Of a DNA stretch of 64,000 nt, positions 16,524-43,296 are shown one piece after another. The position numbers and the translations under genes were made by a program. The stretch is from contig QPMI01000706.1 in the NCBI GenBank assembly GCA_004431415.1, positions 1-64,000 on the forward strand. Reading direction: 5' to 3'. Position 1 is the stretch's first letter. Each line of letters begins with the position of its first letter. Source of the stretch: Cyanophora paradoxa CCMP329 (lineage: Eukaryota > Plantae > Glaucophyta). A model generated the notes under the pieces. It was given only the letters and a program-made list of their open reading frames with translations, was not told the DNA's origin and ran no database searches.

Positions 16524-16708
16524 AAGTTAATAAAAAATGAATGGAAATTTATTCTTATTTAAAAGCGAAAAATTTGAAATTACAATTTCAATTCTAATTA
16601 TATTATACAAAATTTTTTTTAGATAACAAGTAGTTAATAAATATTTACTAAATAAATTTATTAAAAACTTTAAAATAATTGTATAATTTAAATATTCTAT
16701 AATTTGAT

Positions 16709-16738
16709 TTGACAAATTCATGTTAAGTTCGATATAGT
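16709..16738 (+). promoter_or_regulatory. Sigma70-type promoter of the rps12-rps7-tufA-rps10 operon
   Basis: TTGACA-18 nt-TATAGT, ending 47 nt upstream of the rps12 ATG. Confidence 0.7.
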
Positions 16739-16785
16739 AAACAATGAAAAATTCAAGTAGATAGAAGGTTCGAAAACTACTTACA

Positions 16786-17160
16786 ATGCCAACAATTCAA
16801 CAGTTAATTCGATCTAAACGTACAAAAATTGAGAAAAAGACTAAATCTCCGGCTTTAAAAGCTTGCCCTCAACGAAGAGGGGTTTGTACACGTGTTTATA
16901 CTACCACTCCGAAAAAACCAAATTCTGCTCTACGAAAAGTAGCGAGGGTTCGTTTAACTTCTGGTTTTGAAGTAACAGCTTATATTCCAGGAATTGGTCA
17001 TAATTTACAAGAACATTCAGTTGTTCTTGTTCGTGGAGGAAGGGTAAAAGATTTACCAGGTGTTCGTTATCATATTGTTCGTGGTGCACTTGATGCAGCC
17101 GGAGTTAAAGATCGTCGTCAAAGTCGTTCAAAATATGGTGCAAAACGACCAAAAGCATAA
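16786..17160 (+). CDS. rps12: 30S ribosomal protein S12
   Basis: [19 protein letters not shown]. Confidence 0.99.
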
Positions 17161-28794: not shown

Positions 28795-30273
28795 ATGCTT
28801 TCAAGATTAATTATTTCAATTTTTATAATTTTTGAAACAATTTATTTGCAAATTTTTAAACCTGTAAATAAAACTTTTAAACAAGGAGAAGCAAAATTAA
28901 AACGAACATTGCAAACGTTACAATCTCGTGAACTTAGTGAAATTAGAAAACGCGCAATTTCCACTTTATGTTTAATTTTTCTAATACGGATAGGTACATT
29001 TTTACCAATACCAGGCACCGGACTCAATTTTGATTTAGAAAGTTTTCAGCAAAATAATTCGAGAAATGAATTAGCTAATATTTTAAATTTATTATCAGGA
29101 GGTGGATTTTTAGAAATAGGATTTTTCACATTAGGTATTTTACCTTATATGAATGCTTCATTTTTCTTACAAGTTTTAACAAAAATATTACCTTCTTTAG
29201 AGCGTTTTCAAAAAGAACAGGAAGAAATCGCACAACGTGAATTTAAAAAATGGACAAGATATTTAACAGTTATTTGGGCTTTTATTCAAAGTATTGTTAT
29301 TTCTTGGATTTGGATTCGTCCATATGCATTAAATTGGGATTTTTTTTTAGGATTAAAGGTTGTTGTTGCATTAACTTTAGGAGCAGTAATTGTTATGATT
29401 ATTGCGGAACAAATTACTGAAATTGGTTTAACCAACGGCTCTTCACTATTAATTTTTATAAATATTATTGCGCGTATTCCTAATTCAATTGAACAATTAT
29501 TTAATTCTAATATCAATTGGACATTTCCAATGATTTCAAGTTTAATATTAAGCTTAAGTTTATCCTTTATAACAATGTTTGTTATTATTGGATTACAAGA
29601 ATCTGGGCGACCTGTTCCAGTTTTAATTGCAAGACAAGAAGCTGAACGTCAAAAGTTTAATGAACCAATTACAGAAGCAGAACGCCGTAAAACACAAGCT
29701 TATATCTTTTTCCAACTTTTACCAGCTGGAATTATGCCGGTTATTTTTGCTTCTACAATTTTTGATTTAGCTCTTCCAGCTTTTACTAATTTCTTATTAC
29801 AACAAGGAAATTGGGGTTACCAATTAATCAAATCGTTTCCTTTTAATTCATTATTTAAAGATTTTTGTTATCTAATAACAATTATGTTATTTAGTTCAAA
29901 TTATGCATTAACAATTATGATTAATCCTAAAACTTTAGCTGAAAATCTTAATTCAATGAACGCATTAATTCCAGGAGTTCGTCCGGGTTCAGAAACAAAA
30001 GTTTATTCAGAACAATTAATTCATCGATTAAATTTTATTGGTTCTTTTGTACTTGCTTTAGTTTGTATTTTACCTTCTATAGTTGAGCGTTCGCTAGGTC
30101 TTCCTAAGTTACAAATTTTAAGTCCAGTTTCAATATCAATTGCTCTTGGTGTTGCAGTTGATACAACACGTCGAATTACTAGTTATTTAGGATCGTCTTC
30201 TCCTTTTAAAAGAGATTCTTCAAAAAGAGAACCTTTAAAACGAGATTTTTCAAAACGACGTTCCGCAAACTAA
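28795..30273 (+). CDS. secY: Preprotein translocase subunit SecY
   Basis: RIG..LPIPG, LGILPY.NAS, G..NGSSLLIF, AGIMPVIFAS, IPGVRPG; follows the spc cluster. Confidence 0.96.
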   Translation: MLSRLIISIFIIFETIYLQIFKPVNKTFKQGEAKLKRTLQTLQSRELSEIRKRAISTLCLIFLIRIGTFLPIPGTGLNFDLESFQQNNSRNELANILNLLSGGGFLEIGFFTLGILPYMNASFFLQVLTKILPSLERFQKEQEEIAQREFKKWTRYLTVIWAFIQSIVISWIWIRPYALNWDFFLGLKVVVALTLGAVIVMIIAEQITEIGLTNGSSLLIFINIIARIPNSIEQLFNSNINWTFPMISSLILSLSLSFITMFVIIGLQESGRPVPVLIARQEAERQKFNEPITEAERRKTQAYIFFQLLPAGIMPVIFASTIFDLALPAFTNFLLQQGNWGYQLIKSFPFNSLFKDFCYLITIMLFSSNYALTIMINPKTLAENLNSMNALIPGVRPGSETKVYSEQLIHRLNFIGSFVLALVCILPSIVERSLGLPKLQILSPVSISIALGVAVDTTRRITSYLGSSSPFKRDSSKREPLKRDFSKRRSAN

Positions 30274-39364: not shown

Positions 39365-39757
39365 TTATTTAATACTTACTTTTGCTCCAGCTGCTTCAAG
39401 TTCTTTTTTAGCTGCTTCAACTTCGTCTTTAGAAGCCCCTTCTTTAACTACTTTAGGGGTAGCTTCCACTAAATCTTTTGCTTCTTTTAAACCAAGATTA
39501 GTTAAACTACGTACTACTTTTAAAACTGCAATCTTTTTATCAGCAGGTACTTCTTCTAATACTAAATCAAATGCAGATTTTTCTTCTGCTGCATCAGCGC
39601 CACCGCCTGCCGCAGGAGCCATCATAACCATACCCCCACCAACAGGTGCGGATGCATCAACACCAAATGCTTCTTCAATAGCTTTAACTAAGTCAGCTGC
39701 TTCAATTAAAGTTAAACCTTTTAATTGTTCTAAAATTTCATCAGTTTTGGAAGACAT
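39365..39757 (-). CDS. rpl12: 50S ribosomal protein L7/L12
   Basis: [21 protein letters not shown]. Confidence 0.98.
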
Positions 39758-39831: not shown

Positions 39832-40545
39832 TTAAGTATTTTCAGTTAATTTTAAATCGCGTAGTAGATTATAATCAACTTCGATTGAAGGACTCATGGT
39901 AGAAGTAATATAAATACTCTTCCAATATTTTCCTTTAACACCAGAAGGACGATTACGATCAACTGCTTCTTGAACAGCTTTTAAATTTCCAAGTAAAGCT
40001 TCTTCTGAAAAATTTGCTTTTCCAAATAGAACGTGAACAATTCCAGTTCTATCATTTCTAAATTCAAGTTTTCCAGCTTTAAAATCATTAATTGCTTGAG
40101 CTAAATCAAACGTAACAGTACCACCTTTTGGAGAAGGCATTAGTCCTCTTGGACCTAATACACGTCCTAATTTTGCCACTTGTGGCATCATATCTGGTGT
40201 AGCAATTAAACAATCAAAGTCTAAACGTCCGTTTTGAATTTCATCAATTAATTCTTCAGCACCAACAAGATCAGCACCGGCAGTAGAGGCTTCATTAATT
40301 TTTTCTCCTCGTGTAATTACTGCTACTCTTAAAGTTTGACCAGTTCCATTTGGAAGAGTTACTGTTGCACGTAATTGTTGATCATTATACTTTGGATCGA
40401 TTCCTAAACGGCAATGTACTTCAACCGTTTCAATAAATTTTGCTGTTGAAATTTGTTTTAAAAGTTGAATTGCTTCTAATGGTTCATATAGTTGTTCTTC
40501 AACTTTTCCAACCAATTCTTGCATTCTACGTGATCTTTTTTTCAT
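39832..40545 (-). CDS. rpl1: 50S ribosomal protein L1
   Basis: [19 protein letters not shown]. Confidence 0.99.
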
Positions 40546-40593: not shown

Positions 40594-41019
40594 TTAATCA
40601 GTAATGGTAATACCCATATTTCGTGCAGTACCTTCTACGATTCGGCTTGCTGCTTCAAGATTTTGAGTATTTAAATCCGGAAATTTGACCTTAGCAATTT
40701 GTTCTAATTGAGCTTTTGTTATAGAACCTACTTTTTTACGATTAGGTTCACCAGATCCTTTTTCTACACTTGCTGCTTTAGCAATTAATACAGAAGCAGG
40801 AGGTGTTTTTAAAACAAAGCTATAACTTCTATCATCATATACTGTAATTTCGGCCGGTATAACTAAGCCACCTTTATCAGCAGTTTTAGCATTATATTCT
40901 TTACAAAAATTAACACTACTAACCCCATATGGTCCTAATGCTGGACCTACTGGAGGTGCTGGTGTTGCTTTTCCTGCTGGTAAAACGATCTTAATTATGG
41001 CGATTACTTTTTTTGCCAT
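40594..41019 (-). CDS. rpl11: 50S ribosomal protein L11
   Basis: [21 protein letters not shown]. Confidence 0.99.
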
Positions 41020-41076
41020 ATTTTTTTTTAATTGAAATATTTAAAGAATTATATGAAGTATTTATATACTCTCATA

Positions 41077-41151
41077 AAAAAGCTATATATCAAATTCATG
41101 ATATATATATATATATATATCATATATCATAGATTTGATATATAGCTTTTT
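41077..41151. repeat. Inverted repeat with (TA)n core between orf182 and rpl11
   Basis: AAAAAGCTATATATCAAAT ... ATTTGATATATAGCTTTTT (19-bp arms) around an AT microsatellite. Confidence 0.85.
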
Positions 41152-41196
41152 CATATAAATATTCTGTAATTTAATTTTCATTTATTCTAATCTTTA

Positions 41197-41745
41197 TTAT
41201 TTTTTTATTCGGGATTTTAACCACATTAAAAAAATTAAAATACCTTTTTCAAAATTAGAATAAAGTAAAAATATTAATTTAAGAAAATAAATTAAACTAT
41301 TAAAAAAGAAAATTTCTATCCATTCAAATATAGGTTGAAGAGTAAGTTCTAATAAAACTAATAAATAGTTCATAAAATGCAAAAAAATGGCAAATATTAT
41401 ATAAATCCAATAAATAGCTTTATATAATAAATTAACTAAAGAAATTAAAATTTTAAAAATAAAATTAAAAATTCCTGTTAAAATTGGTGCAGTAATATAT
41501 TTACTAATCAAATCAAGAACAAATAAAATAAAAATTGAAAGAAGAGTAAATCTTAGTAATAATCGGGACAAATTTAAAATTTGTTTTTTTGAAACAACAA
41601 CTTTTTTTAGGAAATGATAATAGCTTATTATCCATACATTTTTTTTACTAATCACTAATTTTATTGTTAAAATAAAAATTTTTATTTCTTCGAGAAGAAC
41701 TAAATATAATTGTTTAATCTGATCTTTTAAATTTGGTTTCCCCAT
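41197..41745 (-). CDS. Hydrophobic 182-aa ORF; putative divergent SecE with terminal extensions
   Basis: Long open frame in the trnW-[secE]-rpl11 position; residues 45-91 (FLKKVVVSKKQILNLS...FILFVLDLISKYITAPILTG) resemble the SecE core. Confidence 0.6.
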   Translation of the reverse strand: MGKPNLKDQIKQLYLVLLEEIKIFILTIKLVISKKNVWIISYYHFLKKVVVSKKQILNLSRLLLRFTLLSIFILFVLDLISKYITAPILTGIFNFIFKILISLVNLLYKAIYWIYIIFAIFLHFMNYLLVLLELTLQPIFEWIEIFFFNSLIYFLKLIFLLYSNFEKGILIFLMWLKSRIKK

Positions 41746-41854
41746 AAGTTTTAATATTTAAAAATGTTATTAATTTAATTATTTATAATAATTGAAAAAT
41801 AAAATAAAAGCAACTTTTTAATAGAAATCTTCTAAGTTTTTTTTTAAGTAAATA

Positions 41855-41927
41855 CGCGCCCTGAAGGACTTGAACCCTCGACATCAGGTTTTGGAGACCT
41901 GCGTTCTACCAACTGAACTAAAAGCGC
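41855..41927 (-). tRNA. trnW: tRNA-Trp(CCA)
   Basis: CAGGT-CTCCAAA-ACCTG. Confidence 0.96.
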
Positions 41928-42036
41928 ATTGAAAACTTTAAATAATAAAAATAAATTTTTGTTATAAATATATATATAACATGTTTTAAATAAAAATAGA
42001 AATTTTTACAAATTTCTATTTTTATTATTAAAAAAT

Positions 42037-42240
42037 TTAAGCTGTTGCTGCAGTCCAACTTACTTGAACATTCTCTAATAAAAGAGAAGAATTATAAATT
42101 TGGATAATAATTAATAAAAATACAAAAAATAATAACATAAATACAGCCATTAATGGGGTTGTTCCCCAACCTGGAGCTACTTTCCCATACTCAGAATTTA
42201 AAGGTCTAAGAATATTTCCTAATGCAGTTCTTTGTGGCAT
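42037..42240 (-). CDS. psbH: Photosystem II protein H
   Basis: [29 protein letters not shown]; ATG at 42240 preferred over the upstream GTG. Confidence 0.96.
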
Positions 42241-42423
42241 AGTTAACTTCACTAAAAATTAATTAAATTTATAATATTAAATATATAGGTTCTTTTATCA
42301 AAAAAGAACGAAAAAATTTAATTTCATCAAAAAAAGCTTATTTTTTATTGTTTAAACTCAAAAAATAGAAAAAATTCTTCTTTACTAATAATAAATTATA
42401 ATTTTCTAAAAAACATAAACATT

Positions 42424-43296
42424 ATGAACTTCAAATTAAAAAATTTACGTCTCTCCAGATTAAATCAAGAAAAATCCTCTTCAGTAACTTCTTTTTTTTT
42501 CATTCAAGAACTTTTTGTCTTAGTGAAAAGGTTATTTATTCAATTAAAACGTCGTCCTATAACATTAATTTCCGGTATTTTACAACCCTTATTATGGTTA
42601 ATTTTATTTGGAGCATTATTTCAAAAAGCCCCATTTGCAATTTCAAATTTAGAAAATAATTATCTTCAATTTTTTTATCCTGGAATTTTGGTCTTTACAG
42701 CATTTGCTGGTTCTTTAAATTCAAGTTTGCCATTGATTTTTGATAGAGAATTTGGATTTTTAAATCGTTTATTAGTCGCGCCACTTAATTCCCGTTTTTC
42801 AATTTTATTTTCTTCTGCTTTTTTTATTAGTGTTCTTAGTTTTATTCAAGTTTTTTTTATTATGTTATTTGGCGTATTCTTAGGAATACAATTACCTCCA
42901 TTTAAAAGTCTAATAGTTAGTTTCTTTTTTCTTTTTTTATTAATAATTGGTATAACTACTTTTAGTATTTTATTAGCTTTACTTTTACCAACCCATATTG
43001 AATTAATTGCTGTTATTTTTGTATTGAATTTACCATTATTATTTTCAAGTACAGCTTTAGCTCCTTTAGATTTTATGCCAAGCTGGTTACAAATAATTAG
43101 TTGTTTAAATCCTTTAACTTATACAATAGAACCAATTCGTTTTTTATATTCGCATTCAAGTTGGCTTTTTTCTTCTTCCTTATTTGAGTTGTCTTTCTTT
43201 TCTATTAATATAGGACAAAGTTTAATAATATTAATTATTTTTGATTTAGTCGGTTTTCTTTTATTTAAAAAGATTCTTAAATCAATTTTCATTTAA
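42424..43296 (+). CDS. ycf38: ABC-2 type permease Ycf38
   Basis: QPLLWLILFG, FDREFGFLNRLLVAP, MPSWLQ....NPLTY. Confidence 0.9.
   Translation: MNFKLKNLRLSRLNQEKSSSVTSFFFIQELFVLVKRLFIQLKRRPITLISGILQPLLWLILFGALFQKAPFAISNLENNYLQFFYPGILVFTAFAGSLNSSLPLIFDREFGFLNRLLVAPLNSRFSILFSSAFFISVLSFIQVFFIMLFGVFLGIQLPPFKSLIVSFFFLFLLIIGITTFSILLALLLPTHIELIAVIFVLNLPLLFSSTALAPLDFMPSWLQIISCLNPLTYTIEPIRFLYSHSSWLFSSSLFELSFFSINIGQSLIILIIFDLVGFLLFKKILKSIFI

Follow-up and report, generated by a model that had tools for sequence, protein, structure and literature searches.

orf182 of the Cyanophora plastid genome, a candidate fast-evolving and enlarged SecE

We analyzed a stretch of 64,000 nucleotides of Cyanophora paradoxa CCMP329 (contig QPMI01000706.1, positions 1 to 64,000; hereafter the window). 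It is part of the plastid (cyanelle) genome of a glaucophyte; its proteins have their closest relatives among sequences labelled Cyanophora. The subject of this work is orf182, an open reading frame (ORF) located between trnW and rpl11. From sequence comparisons, orf182 is likely to be a fast-evolving, enlarged descendant of the cyanobacterial secE gene, and its product is most likely still the SecE of the plastid SecY channel. The descent from secE appears highly probable; continued service as a SecE subunit is predicted with less assurance, as somewhat probable. The ORF is real and conserved, synteny with secE loci holds, and the similarity to SecE falls in a fixed register. An initial annotation of this DNA had proposed orf182 as a cryptic SecE: synteny and profile tests in the forward and reciprocal directions, with their controls, agree with this proposal, but the scores are modest and the curated Pfam threshold was missed. 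Taken singly, none of the scores is conclusive, and the curated test of family membership failed; orf182 is therefore not classed here as an established member of the SecE family.

Gene order around orf182

The initial annotation had placed orf182 on the same strand as its neighbours, between trnW and rpl11-rpl1-rpl12, and had stated that cyanobacteria have secE and nusG at this place. The ORF list and the ARAGORN coordinates agree with the first statement (Table 1). The order in the window is trnW-orf182-rpl11-rpl1-rpl12; trnW(cca), orf182 and rpl11 are all on the minus strand, with 108 nt between trnW and orf182 and 177 nt between orf182 and rpl11. The cyanobacterial order which it had given was also correct: a cyanobacterial metagenome contig (L077) reads rplS-trnW-secE-nusG-rpl11, and Thermosynechococcus (L068) reads secE-nusG-rpl11-rpl1-rpl10-rpl12. 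The gene context of orf182 is that of bacterial and cyanobacterial secE. Among 12 loci checked, trnW precedes secE on the same strand in four (L076, L077, L078 and L081, cyanobacterial or bacterial).

A closer comparison is provided by a 1639-bp contig which carries the exact L11 of Glaucocystis incrassata. At 61-264 this contig encodes a protein of 67 amino acids (aa) matched by Pfam SecE, 144 nt upstream of rpl11 (409-834), which is followed by rpl1; nusG is absent. Since Glaucocystis keeps a canonical secE upstream of rpl11, orf182 sits, on the correct strand, in the secE slot of a sister genus. The view of the initial annotation that secE is not known as a standard plastid gene is out of date, secE having been listed in 2018 among the plastid genes of some, not all, glaucophyte genera (PMC6330054). 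As glaucophyte plastid secE has thus been published since 2018, orf182 would be a variant of a known plastid secE, and the gain is incremental.

Table 1. Coordinates of orf182, of segments of its product and of other features of the window
Feature	Position	Strand	Description
orf182	41197..41745 (including stop codon)	minus	ATG ORF, 182 aa, predicted membrane protein
N-terminal Lys-rich helix, residues 6-48	41602..41730	minus	putative counterpart of the SecE amphipathic helix
Putative degenerate hinge KKVVVSKKQIL, residues 47-57	41575..41607	minus	SecE consensus KKVvWPskkel; one residue shorter, W and P lost
SecE-like core, residues 46-88	41482..41610	minus	putative hinge and predicted transmembrane helix (about 62-84); Asp78 on the conserved SecE Asp
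Residues 78-101, DLISKYITAPILTGIFNFIFKILI	41443..41514	minus	24/24 identical between two C. paradoxa-labelled strains
C-terminal hydrophobic extension, residues 92-182	41200..41472	minus	about three predicted helices (hydropathy, model)
tRNA-Trp (cca)	41854..41928	minus	ARAGORN; upstream neighbour of orf182
rpl11	40594..41019	minus	downstream neighbour of orf182, followed by rpl1 and rpl12
rpl1	39832-40545	minus	downstream of rpl11
rpl12	39365-39757	minus	downstream of rpl1
Hairpin in the orf182-rpl11 spacer	41073..41155	minus	near-perfect, with about 38 bp surrounding an (AT)n repeat; RNA folding
secY	28795..30273	plus	Pfam SecY E 1.1e-65, residues 111-457 of 492; plastid-encoded, presumed partner

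Similarity of orf182 to SecE

Two orthologues of orf182, described below, were included in the comparisons: P0002, from another strain labelled C. paradoxa, and P0129, from Cyanophora sudae. Core pieces of orf182 were matched by Pfam SecE (PF00584) with E 0.0098-0.011 and 16 bits, over profile positions 4-49 of 55; the piece of residues 40-95 gave E 0.0098 and 16.3 bits over positions 8-49. For the core of the C. sudae protein, SecE was the sole family matched (E 0.03-0.04, with 0.032 for the counterpart of residues 40-95; 14.6 bits), in the same register as orf182. A hidden Markov model (HMM) was also built from 36 bacterial SecE of rpl11 loci and scored on 1771 tiles of 60 aa, taken from all six-frame segments of the window. 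The best of these tiles corresponds to orf182 residues ~37-96 (E 0.028); further tiles of orf182 score lower. The cores of the three orthologues match the SecE HMM (Z=1) with P values of 1.3e-4, 3.4e-4 and 2.3e-3, in one register. In the HMM alignment, LKKVV-VSKKQIL is placed on LkKVvWPskkel and Asp78 on the conserved Asp.

Profiles were then compared with profiles. With hhalign, the three-sequence orf182 family aligned with 48 SecE at a score of 24.8 (P 0.001), against 13.8 for the reversed alignment. Controls consisted of 200 block shuffles, in which local composition and hydrophobic runs are kept, and 200 full shuffles: none of the 400 reached the native score (mean 12.3, standard deviation 2.2, maximum 20.4; p about 4e-4 from a Gumbel fit). 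Against a fresh alignment of 30 diverse SecE (A5), hhalign gave P 2.7e-4 and a probability of 42% for the full length, and P 6.8e-5 and a probability of 63% for the orf182 core. A remote similarity to SecE, in a single register, was found beyond the composition-matched controls.

For the reciprocal comparison, 5000 six-frame segments were drawn from 86 loci of bacteria, cyanobacteria and plastids, 440 kb in total; they included 69 SecE. When ranked by an HMM of the orf182 core, true SecE filled 8 of the first 10 places, 13 of the first 20 and 31 of the first 50 (hypergeometric p 1.4e-20, a value which overstates independence because the retrieved SecE are related to one another). The SecE so ranked span several phyla, and their ranking was not displaced when the window's own membrane proteins were added as decoys. 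A control HMM, made from the equally hydrophobic C-terminal half of orf182, placed no SecE in its top 20. An ORF unrelated to SecE would need the exact slot, the strand, and a SecE similarity seen in fewer than one in a thousand composition-matched controls, with the same register in three orthologues.

The reading frame

orf182 is a genuine ORF and not a chance frame. The G+C content of the region is 17.7% (range 15-19%, like the flanking spacers). The frame is free of stops for 186 codons; at the local composition one stop is expected every ~11 codons, so that the probability of such a run is ~2e-8. When the rpl11-trnW spacer was shuffled 2000 times, the longest frame had 51 codons on average and 106 at most, compared to 186 in the native sequence. 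The G+C content falls from codon position 1 to 3 (0.25, 0.17 and 0.12), and position 2 contains 55% T, which is typical of a membrane protein.

Architecture of the predicted protein

Residues 45-91 (nt 41613-41473) read FLKKVVVSKKQILNLSRLLLRFTLLSIFILFVLDLISKYITAPILTG, exactly the peptide which the initial annotation had quoted. The SecE pattern that it had given is likewise the one found in cyanobacterial loci L076-L080, which read ...EELNKVVWPSRQQLISES.AV.LMV.LSAT.IYLVD..F.W. Its statement that the hinge has lost WP is right for the window protein and for P0002, but the C. sudae protein keeps the Pro. The HMMER comparison of the core with Pfam SecE which it had recommended did return a SecE match, though at a score of 16.3 bits, below the gathering score of 22.7. 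The about 90 extra hydrophobic residues which it had seen after the SecE-like helix are confirmed by hydropathy, and the secY gene of the window does have the extensions that it had reported; the co-diverged SecY-SecE pair that it had put forward is conjectural.

The N-terminal part of the protein is basic, with 10 Lys among residues 1-48; the membrane part is poor in Lys. An AlphaFold2 model computed from the three sequences, although weak (predicted local distance difference test 71, predicted template modelling score 0.30), has a helix at residues 6-48 and a break at 49-52, which is the position of the proposed hinge. Given a deletion of one residue, KKVV, S/P, KK(Q/E) and Asp78 are correctly spaced. 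The deletion affects the W-P-S/T of the hinge, of which the window protein keeps Ser and the C. sudae protein Pro (TTFLPKKEII); W is absent in all three orthologues. A strict hinge pattern, designed post hoc, matches 18 of the 69 SecE and, out of about 5300 decoy segments, one other. The start of the core transmembrane (TM) helix contains two Arg.

The C-terminal extension shows poor conservation, and that of C. sudae has 21 residues fewer. Pfam scans of the N-terminal and C-terminal parts of orf182 gave no matches, and therefore no sign of a NusG or SecG remnant. Because basic residues are found at both ends of the protein, an even number of helices, with both termini stromal, seems likely.

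Conservation within Cyanophora

A word-index search with the whole orf182 protein returned P0002 alone, and an exhaustive HMMER search of 1.84 billion protein representatives returned P0002 and the C. sudae P0129, nothing further. P0002, annotated as hypothetical, also has 182 aa and is 64% identical to orf182 in a gapless alignment. P0129 corresponds to YP_009504525.1 (161 aa, 35% identical to orf182) and bears the database names hypothetical or transmembrane protein; orthologues are otherwise called "uncharacterized". As its accession adjoins that of C. sudae L11 (YP_009504526.1), P0129 is the positional orthologue of orf182. An ORF is present in the orf182 slot in at least four Cyanophora lineages. 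Compared to the 35% identity of orf182, the neighbouring L11 is about 92% identical to that of C. sudae. Since its relatives were found in Cyanophora and given this difference in identity, orf182 is conserved in the genus yet fast-evolving. A word-index search with the alignment of the orf182 core gave 2 candidates, neither of which scored, and a metagenome scan with the orf182 alignment found no relatives.

Between the window and the P0002 strain, synonymous divergence (dS) is 0.33-0.38 and non-synonymous divergence about 0.02 for rpl11, rpl1 and rpl12, and the spacers carry indels (74 versus 83 nt between rpl1 and rpl12). At a neighbour dS of about 0.35, the exact length of orf182, the lack of stops and the block without replacements at residues 78-101 indicate purifying selection, as judged by this comparison with neighbouring genes. 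Over the deeper split with C. sudae, identity amounts to 52% for residues 53-100, 36% for the N-terminus and 24% for residues 101-182. On these figures the conserved heart of orf182 is the SecE-like stretch together with the predicted helix that follows it.

Unannotated ORFs were also observed about 147 nt upstream of rpl11 in Logan contigs of further Cyanophora-like samples (ERR10034878/80/84/87). In two samples they are called at 189 aa, or 191 where the contig end truncates the ORF; in two others, with the same L11 protein, they are called at 159 aa. Among close strains the orthologue varies either in its start codon or in its length.

SecY and other Sec components of C. paradoxa

The Pfam match of the SecY encoded in the window begins at profile position 3, which is residue 111 of the protein. 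The N-terminal extension before it is rich in Ile, Phe and Lys, and the C-terminal tail is basic, made of Ser, Arg and Lys. In 2008 secE had not yet been found in C. paradoxa, including among expressed sequence tags (ESTs), and secG had not been found either (PMC2600650). A plastid-encoded SecY whose SecE partner had not been found in this species (PMC2600650) was counted here as a need for a plastid SecE. A cyanelle SecY complex of 280 kDa is known from that work (PMC2600650). There is no secG/ycf47 on this plastome. The peptidoglycan-walled plastid of Cyanophora is unusual in that the thylakoid and the inner envelope membrane each have Sec translocases (PMC2600650). In plants SecE is nuclear-encoded (PMC6857650). 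Neither ORF182 nor SecY nor SecE appears in the proteomics supplements of PMC4510345, and our literature search found no paper equating orf182 with SecE.

Comparison with described SecE proteins

orf182 shares with cyanobacterial SecE (71 aa in Thermosynechococcus, L068; L076-L080) the order trnW-secE-(nusG)-rpl11. The two resemble each other in the motif LxKVV(W)(P)S+xQ(L/I), in the TM helix of about 21-22 residues that comes next and in the Asp behind it, as well as in a basic stromal or cytoplasmic side preceding the helix. The differences are of several kinds. Cyanobacterial SecE stops 10-13 residues past the Asp, whereas orf182 runs on for about 100 residues. Where cyanobacterial SecE has the hinge WP, the window protein has a single V and P0002 an L, the Pro being kept in C. 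sudae. The N-terminal part of orf182 is longer and more hydrophobic, and two Arg lie inside the start of the helix. Additional helices exist in the SecE of Escherichia coli, which has three TM helices; the extra ones are dispensable and N-terminal to the conserved helix. orf182 resembles it in having extra helices beside the conserved one, but there they are N-terminal and in orf182 C-terminal. To our knowledge, no SecE or Sec61-gamma with extra C-terminal helices has been described.

The plastid secE of Glaucocystis and other glaucophytes (PMC6330054) is, like orf182, plastid-encoded, directly upstream of rpl11-rpl1, without nusG, and from the same phylum. The Glaucocystis product has 67 aa and is recognized by Pfam, whereas that of orf182 has 182 aa, a sub-threshold score, a degenerate hinge and a C-terminal extension. 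SECE1 and SECE2 of Arabidopsis (PMC6857650) are also plastid SecE, partners of plastid SecY homologues, with a single conserved TM helix; in contrast to orf182 they are nuclear-encoded, imported and tail-anchored, and have no C-terminal extension.

Alternative explanations

Several results weigh against the identification of orf182 as SecE. Some concern the protein itself. The W that is invariant in the 30 SecE of A5 is absent from all three orthologues. Roughly three helices, in ~90-100 residues, follow the conserved helix, which is not the last TM helix as it is in SecE; in all 48 SecE collected, only 5-15 residues come after the Asp. Between the two closest strains, the TM segment at residues 61-77 is the least conserved part (53%). 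Other points concern the scores. Scans of the whole protein with curated Pfam (E<=10) and NCBIfam matched no family; in HMMER, the composition correction subtracts about 15-19 bits from the very hydrophobic orf182. As said above, the best piece of orf182 remains under the gathering score of PF00584. MatE matches this same piece with equal strength, which means that hydrophobic pieces draw weak matches. The core piece of P0002 has no SecE match in Pfam. The hhalign probabilities are only 21-63%, and a profile of cyanobacterial SecE only (nine close sequences, effective number of sequences 2.0, too shallow) gave P 0.08. Searches with the orf182 family of PDB sequences (by profile) and of the 1.84 billion representatives (by exhaustive HMMER) revealed no SecE in the former and no bridge to SecE in the latter, Cyanophora relatives only. 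A feature search of the ESM Atlas returned nothing, and structure matches were generic helices.

The main rival explanation, which we consider unlikely, is that orf182 derives from secE but is no longer SecE: a relic which was lengthened and took on the role of a different small membrane protein, or which is slowly decaying, while a nuclear SecE serves SecY. It would account for the low identity with C. sudae (35%, versus about 92% for L11), the loss of the hinge W, the multi-helix C-terminal extension and the variable length of the protein (161 and 182 aa, and 159 or 189 aa in Logan contigs), and it is in line with the nuclear location of SecE in plants (PMC6857650); the most conserved block (residues 78-101) is also mostly beyond the SecE-like helix. 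However, across the deeper split within Cyanophora conservation is highest in the SecE-like stretch, no SecE was found among the C. paradoxa ESTs in 2008 (PMC2600650), and the sequence of SecE is poorly conserved everywhere, with a mean column identity of 29% within A5.

It is quite unlikely that orf182 is a lineage-specific membrane ORF of Cyanophora unrelated to SecE, secE having been lost, and that the likeness comes from a composition rich in Lys, Ile, Leu and Phe, as encoded by A+T-rich DNA, and from a generic TM helix with positive flanks. Such an ORF would have had to land in the exact secE slot on the right strand. Block shuffles, the reversed alignment and six-frame decoys (low-G+C loci and the window) do not reproduce its score, three orthologues match in one register, and the C-terminal half, which is just as hydrophobic, yields an HMM that does not retrieve SecE. 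This explanation draws its strength from the fact that every SecE score is below threshold, from the equal MatE match, from the other orf182 tiles which also score slightly against the SecE HMM, and from the restriction of the HMMER matches among 1.84 billion proteins to Cyanophora relatives. In addition, a plastid-like genome (L087, see below) has trnW directly before rpl11, the slot being empty.

Finally, an untranslated frame, open by chance or as a residue in a spacer, would fit the G+C content of 15-19%, equal to that of spacers, but is hardly credible in view of 186 open codons versus a maximum of 106 in 2000 shuffles, a G+C gradient of coding type over the codon positions, a length kept without indels at 64% identity while spacers carry indels, and the presence of the ORF in at least four Cyanophora lineages.

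Proposed function

The gene has probably kept the ancestral slot of secE, trnW-secE-(nusG lost)-rpl11. It has evolved very fast in an extremely A+T-rich setting, with a gain of about 90 hydrophobic residues, or roughly three helices, at its C-terminus. If orf182 is the SecE of the plastid SecY channel, as is most likely, the following scheme can be proposed. The Lys-rich N-terminal helix would lie on the stromal face, and the degenerate hinge (KKVV-SKKQIL) would lead into the TM helix (about residues 62-84, ending near Asp78). This helix would run across the rear side of SecY and hold the two halves of SecY together, as it does in bacterial SecYE. A bolder version, a Sec channel with a plastid-encoded and remodelled SecE whose extension replaces SecG or docks YidC/Alb3, would be a SecE architecture undescribed in bacteria, archaea and organelles; we regard it as very unlikely.

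Other features of the window and related contigs

The hairpin of the orf182-rpl11 spacer has a folding energy of -37.4 kcal/mol (z -9.3), and none of 200 shuffles folds equally well. It is likely a plastid-type 3' end or processing stem-loop, to judge from its predicted fold; if so, it would end the orf182 transcript separately. Logan and metagenome contigs of related plastids break at the same AT repeat just upstream of rpl11.

A plastid-like contig of ENA (L087), whose L11 is 77% identical to that of the window, has trnW(cca) 120 nt before rpl11 with no ORF between them, and its region 98-716 shows the emptied state of the secE/nusG slot. Its first ~75 nt look like an assembly or adapter artefact. 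On two contigs of the JGI metagenomes 3300039353 and 3300037891 (L089:1-2423 and L090:1-1876), rpl11-rpl1-rpl12 is followed by petD (cytochrome b6-f subunit IV) on the opposite strand, as in the window; on L089 another, partial gene lies past petD, likewise on the opposite strand. Their L11 is 76% identical, and both contigs stop about 55-75 nt upstream of rpl11, where the G+C content is 9-13%. Their source may be an as yet unsampled plastid of glaucophyte-like type, present in environmental data.

Two other frames of the window were noted. At 42424-43296 on the plus strand, opposite to orf182 and beyond trnW and a 71-aa ORF (42037-42252), lies a 290-aa ABC-2 type transporter permease (Pfam PF01061, E 3e-33) with a low G+C content of about 23-28%. 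At 16530-16796 on the minus strand, a small hydrophobic A+T-rich frame of 88 codons obtains 18 bits against the orf182 core HMM only without composition correction, and 10.8 bits (bias 8.8) with it; this score is probably a composition effect.

Significance

Cyanophora is the model glaucophyte. If the identification of orf182 as SecE is true, a classic unassigned ORF of the cyanelle would gain a function, and plastid secE would be retained in at least two glaucophyte genera rather than being a patchy oddity. orf182 would also be a natural example of SecE drift, with the hinge W lost and C-terminal helices added in a protein which presumably still clamps SecY. A practical warning also comes from this case: curated profile scans miss fast-evolving organelle genes with A+T bias, and synteny combined with controlled profile tests can recover such genes.

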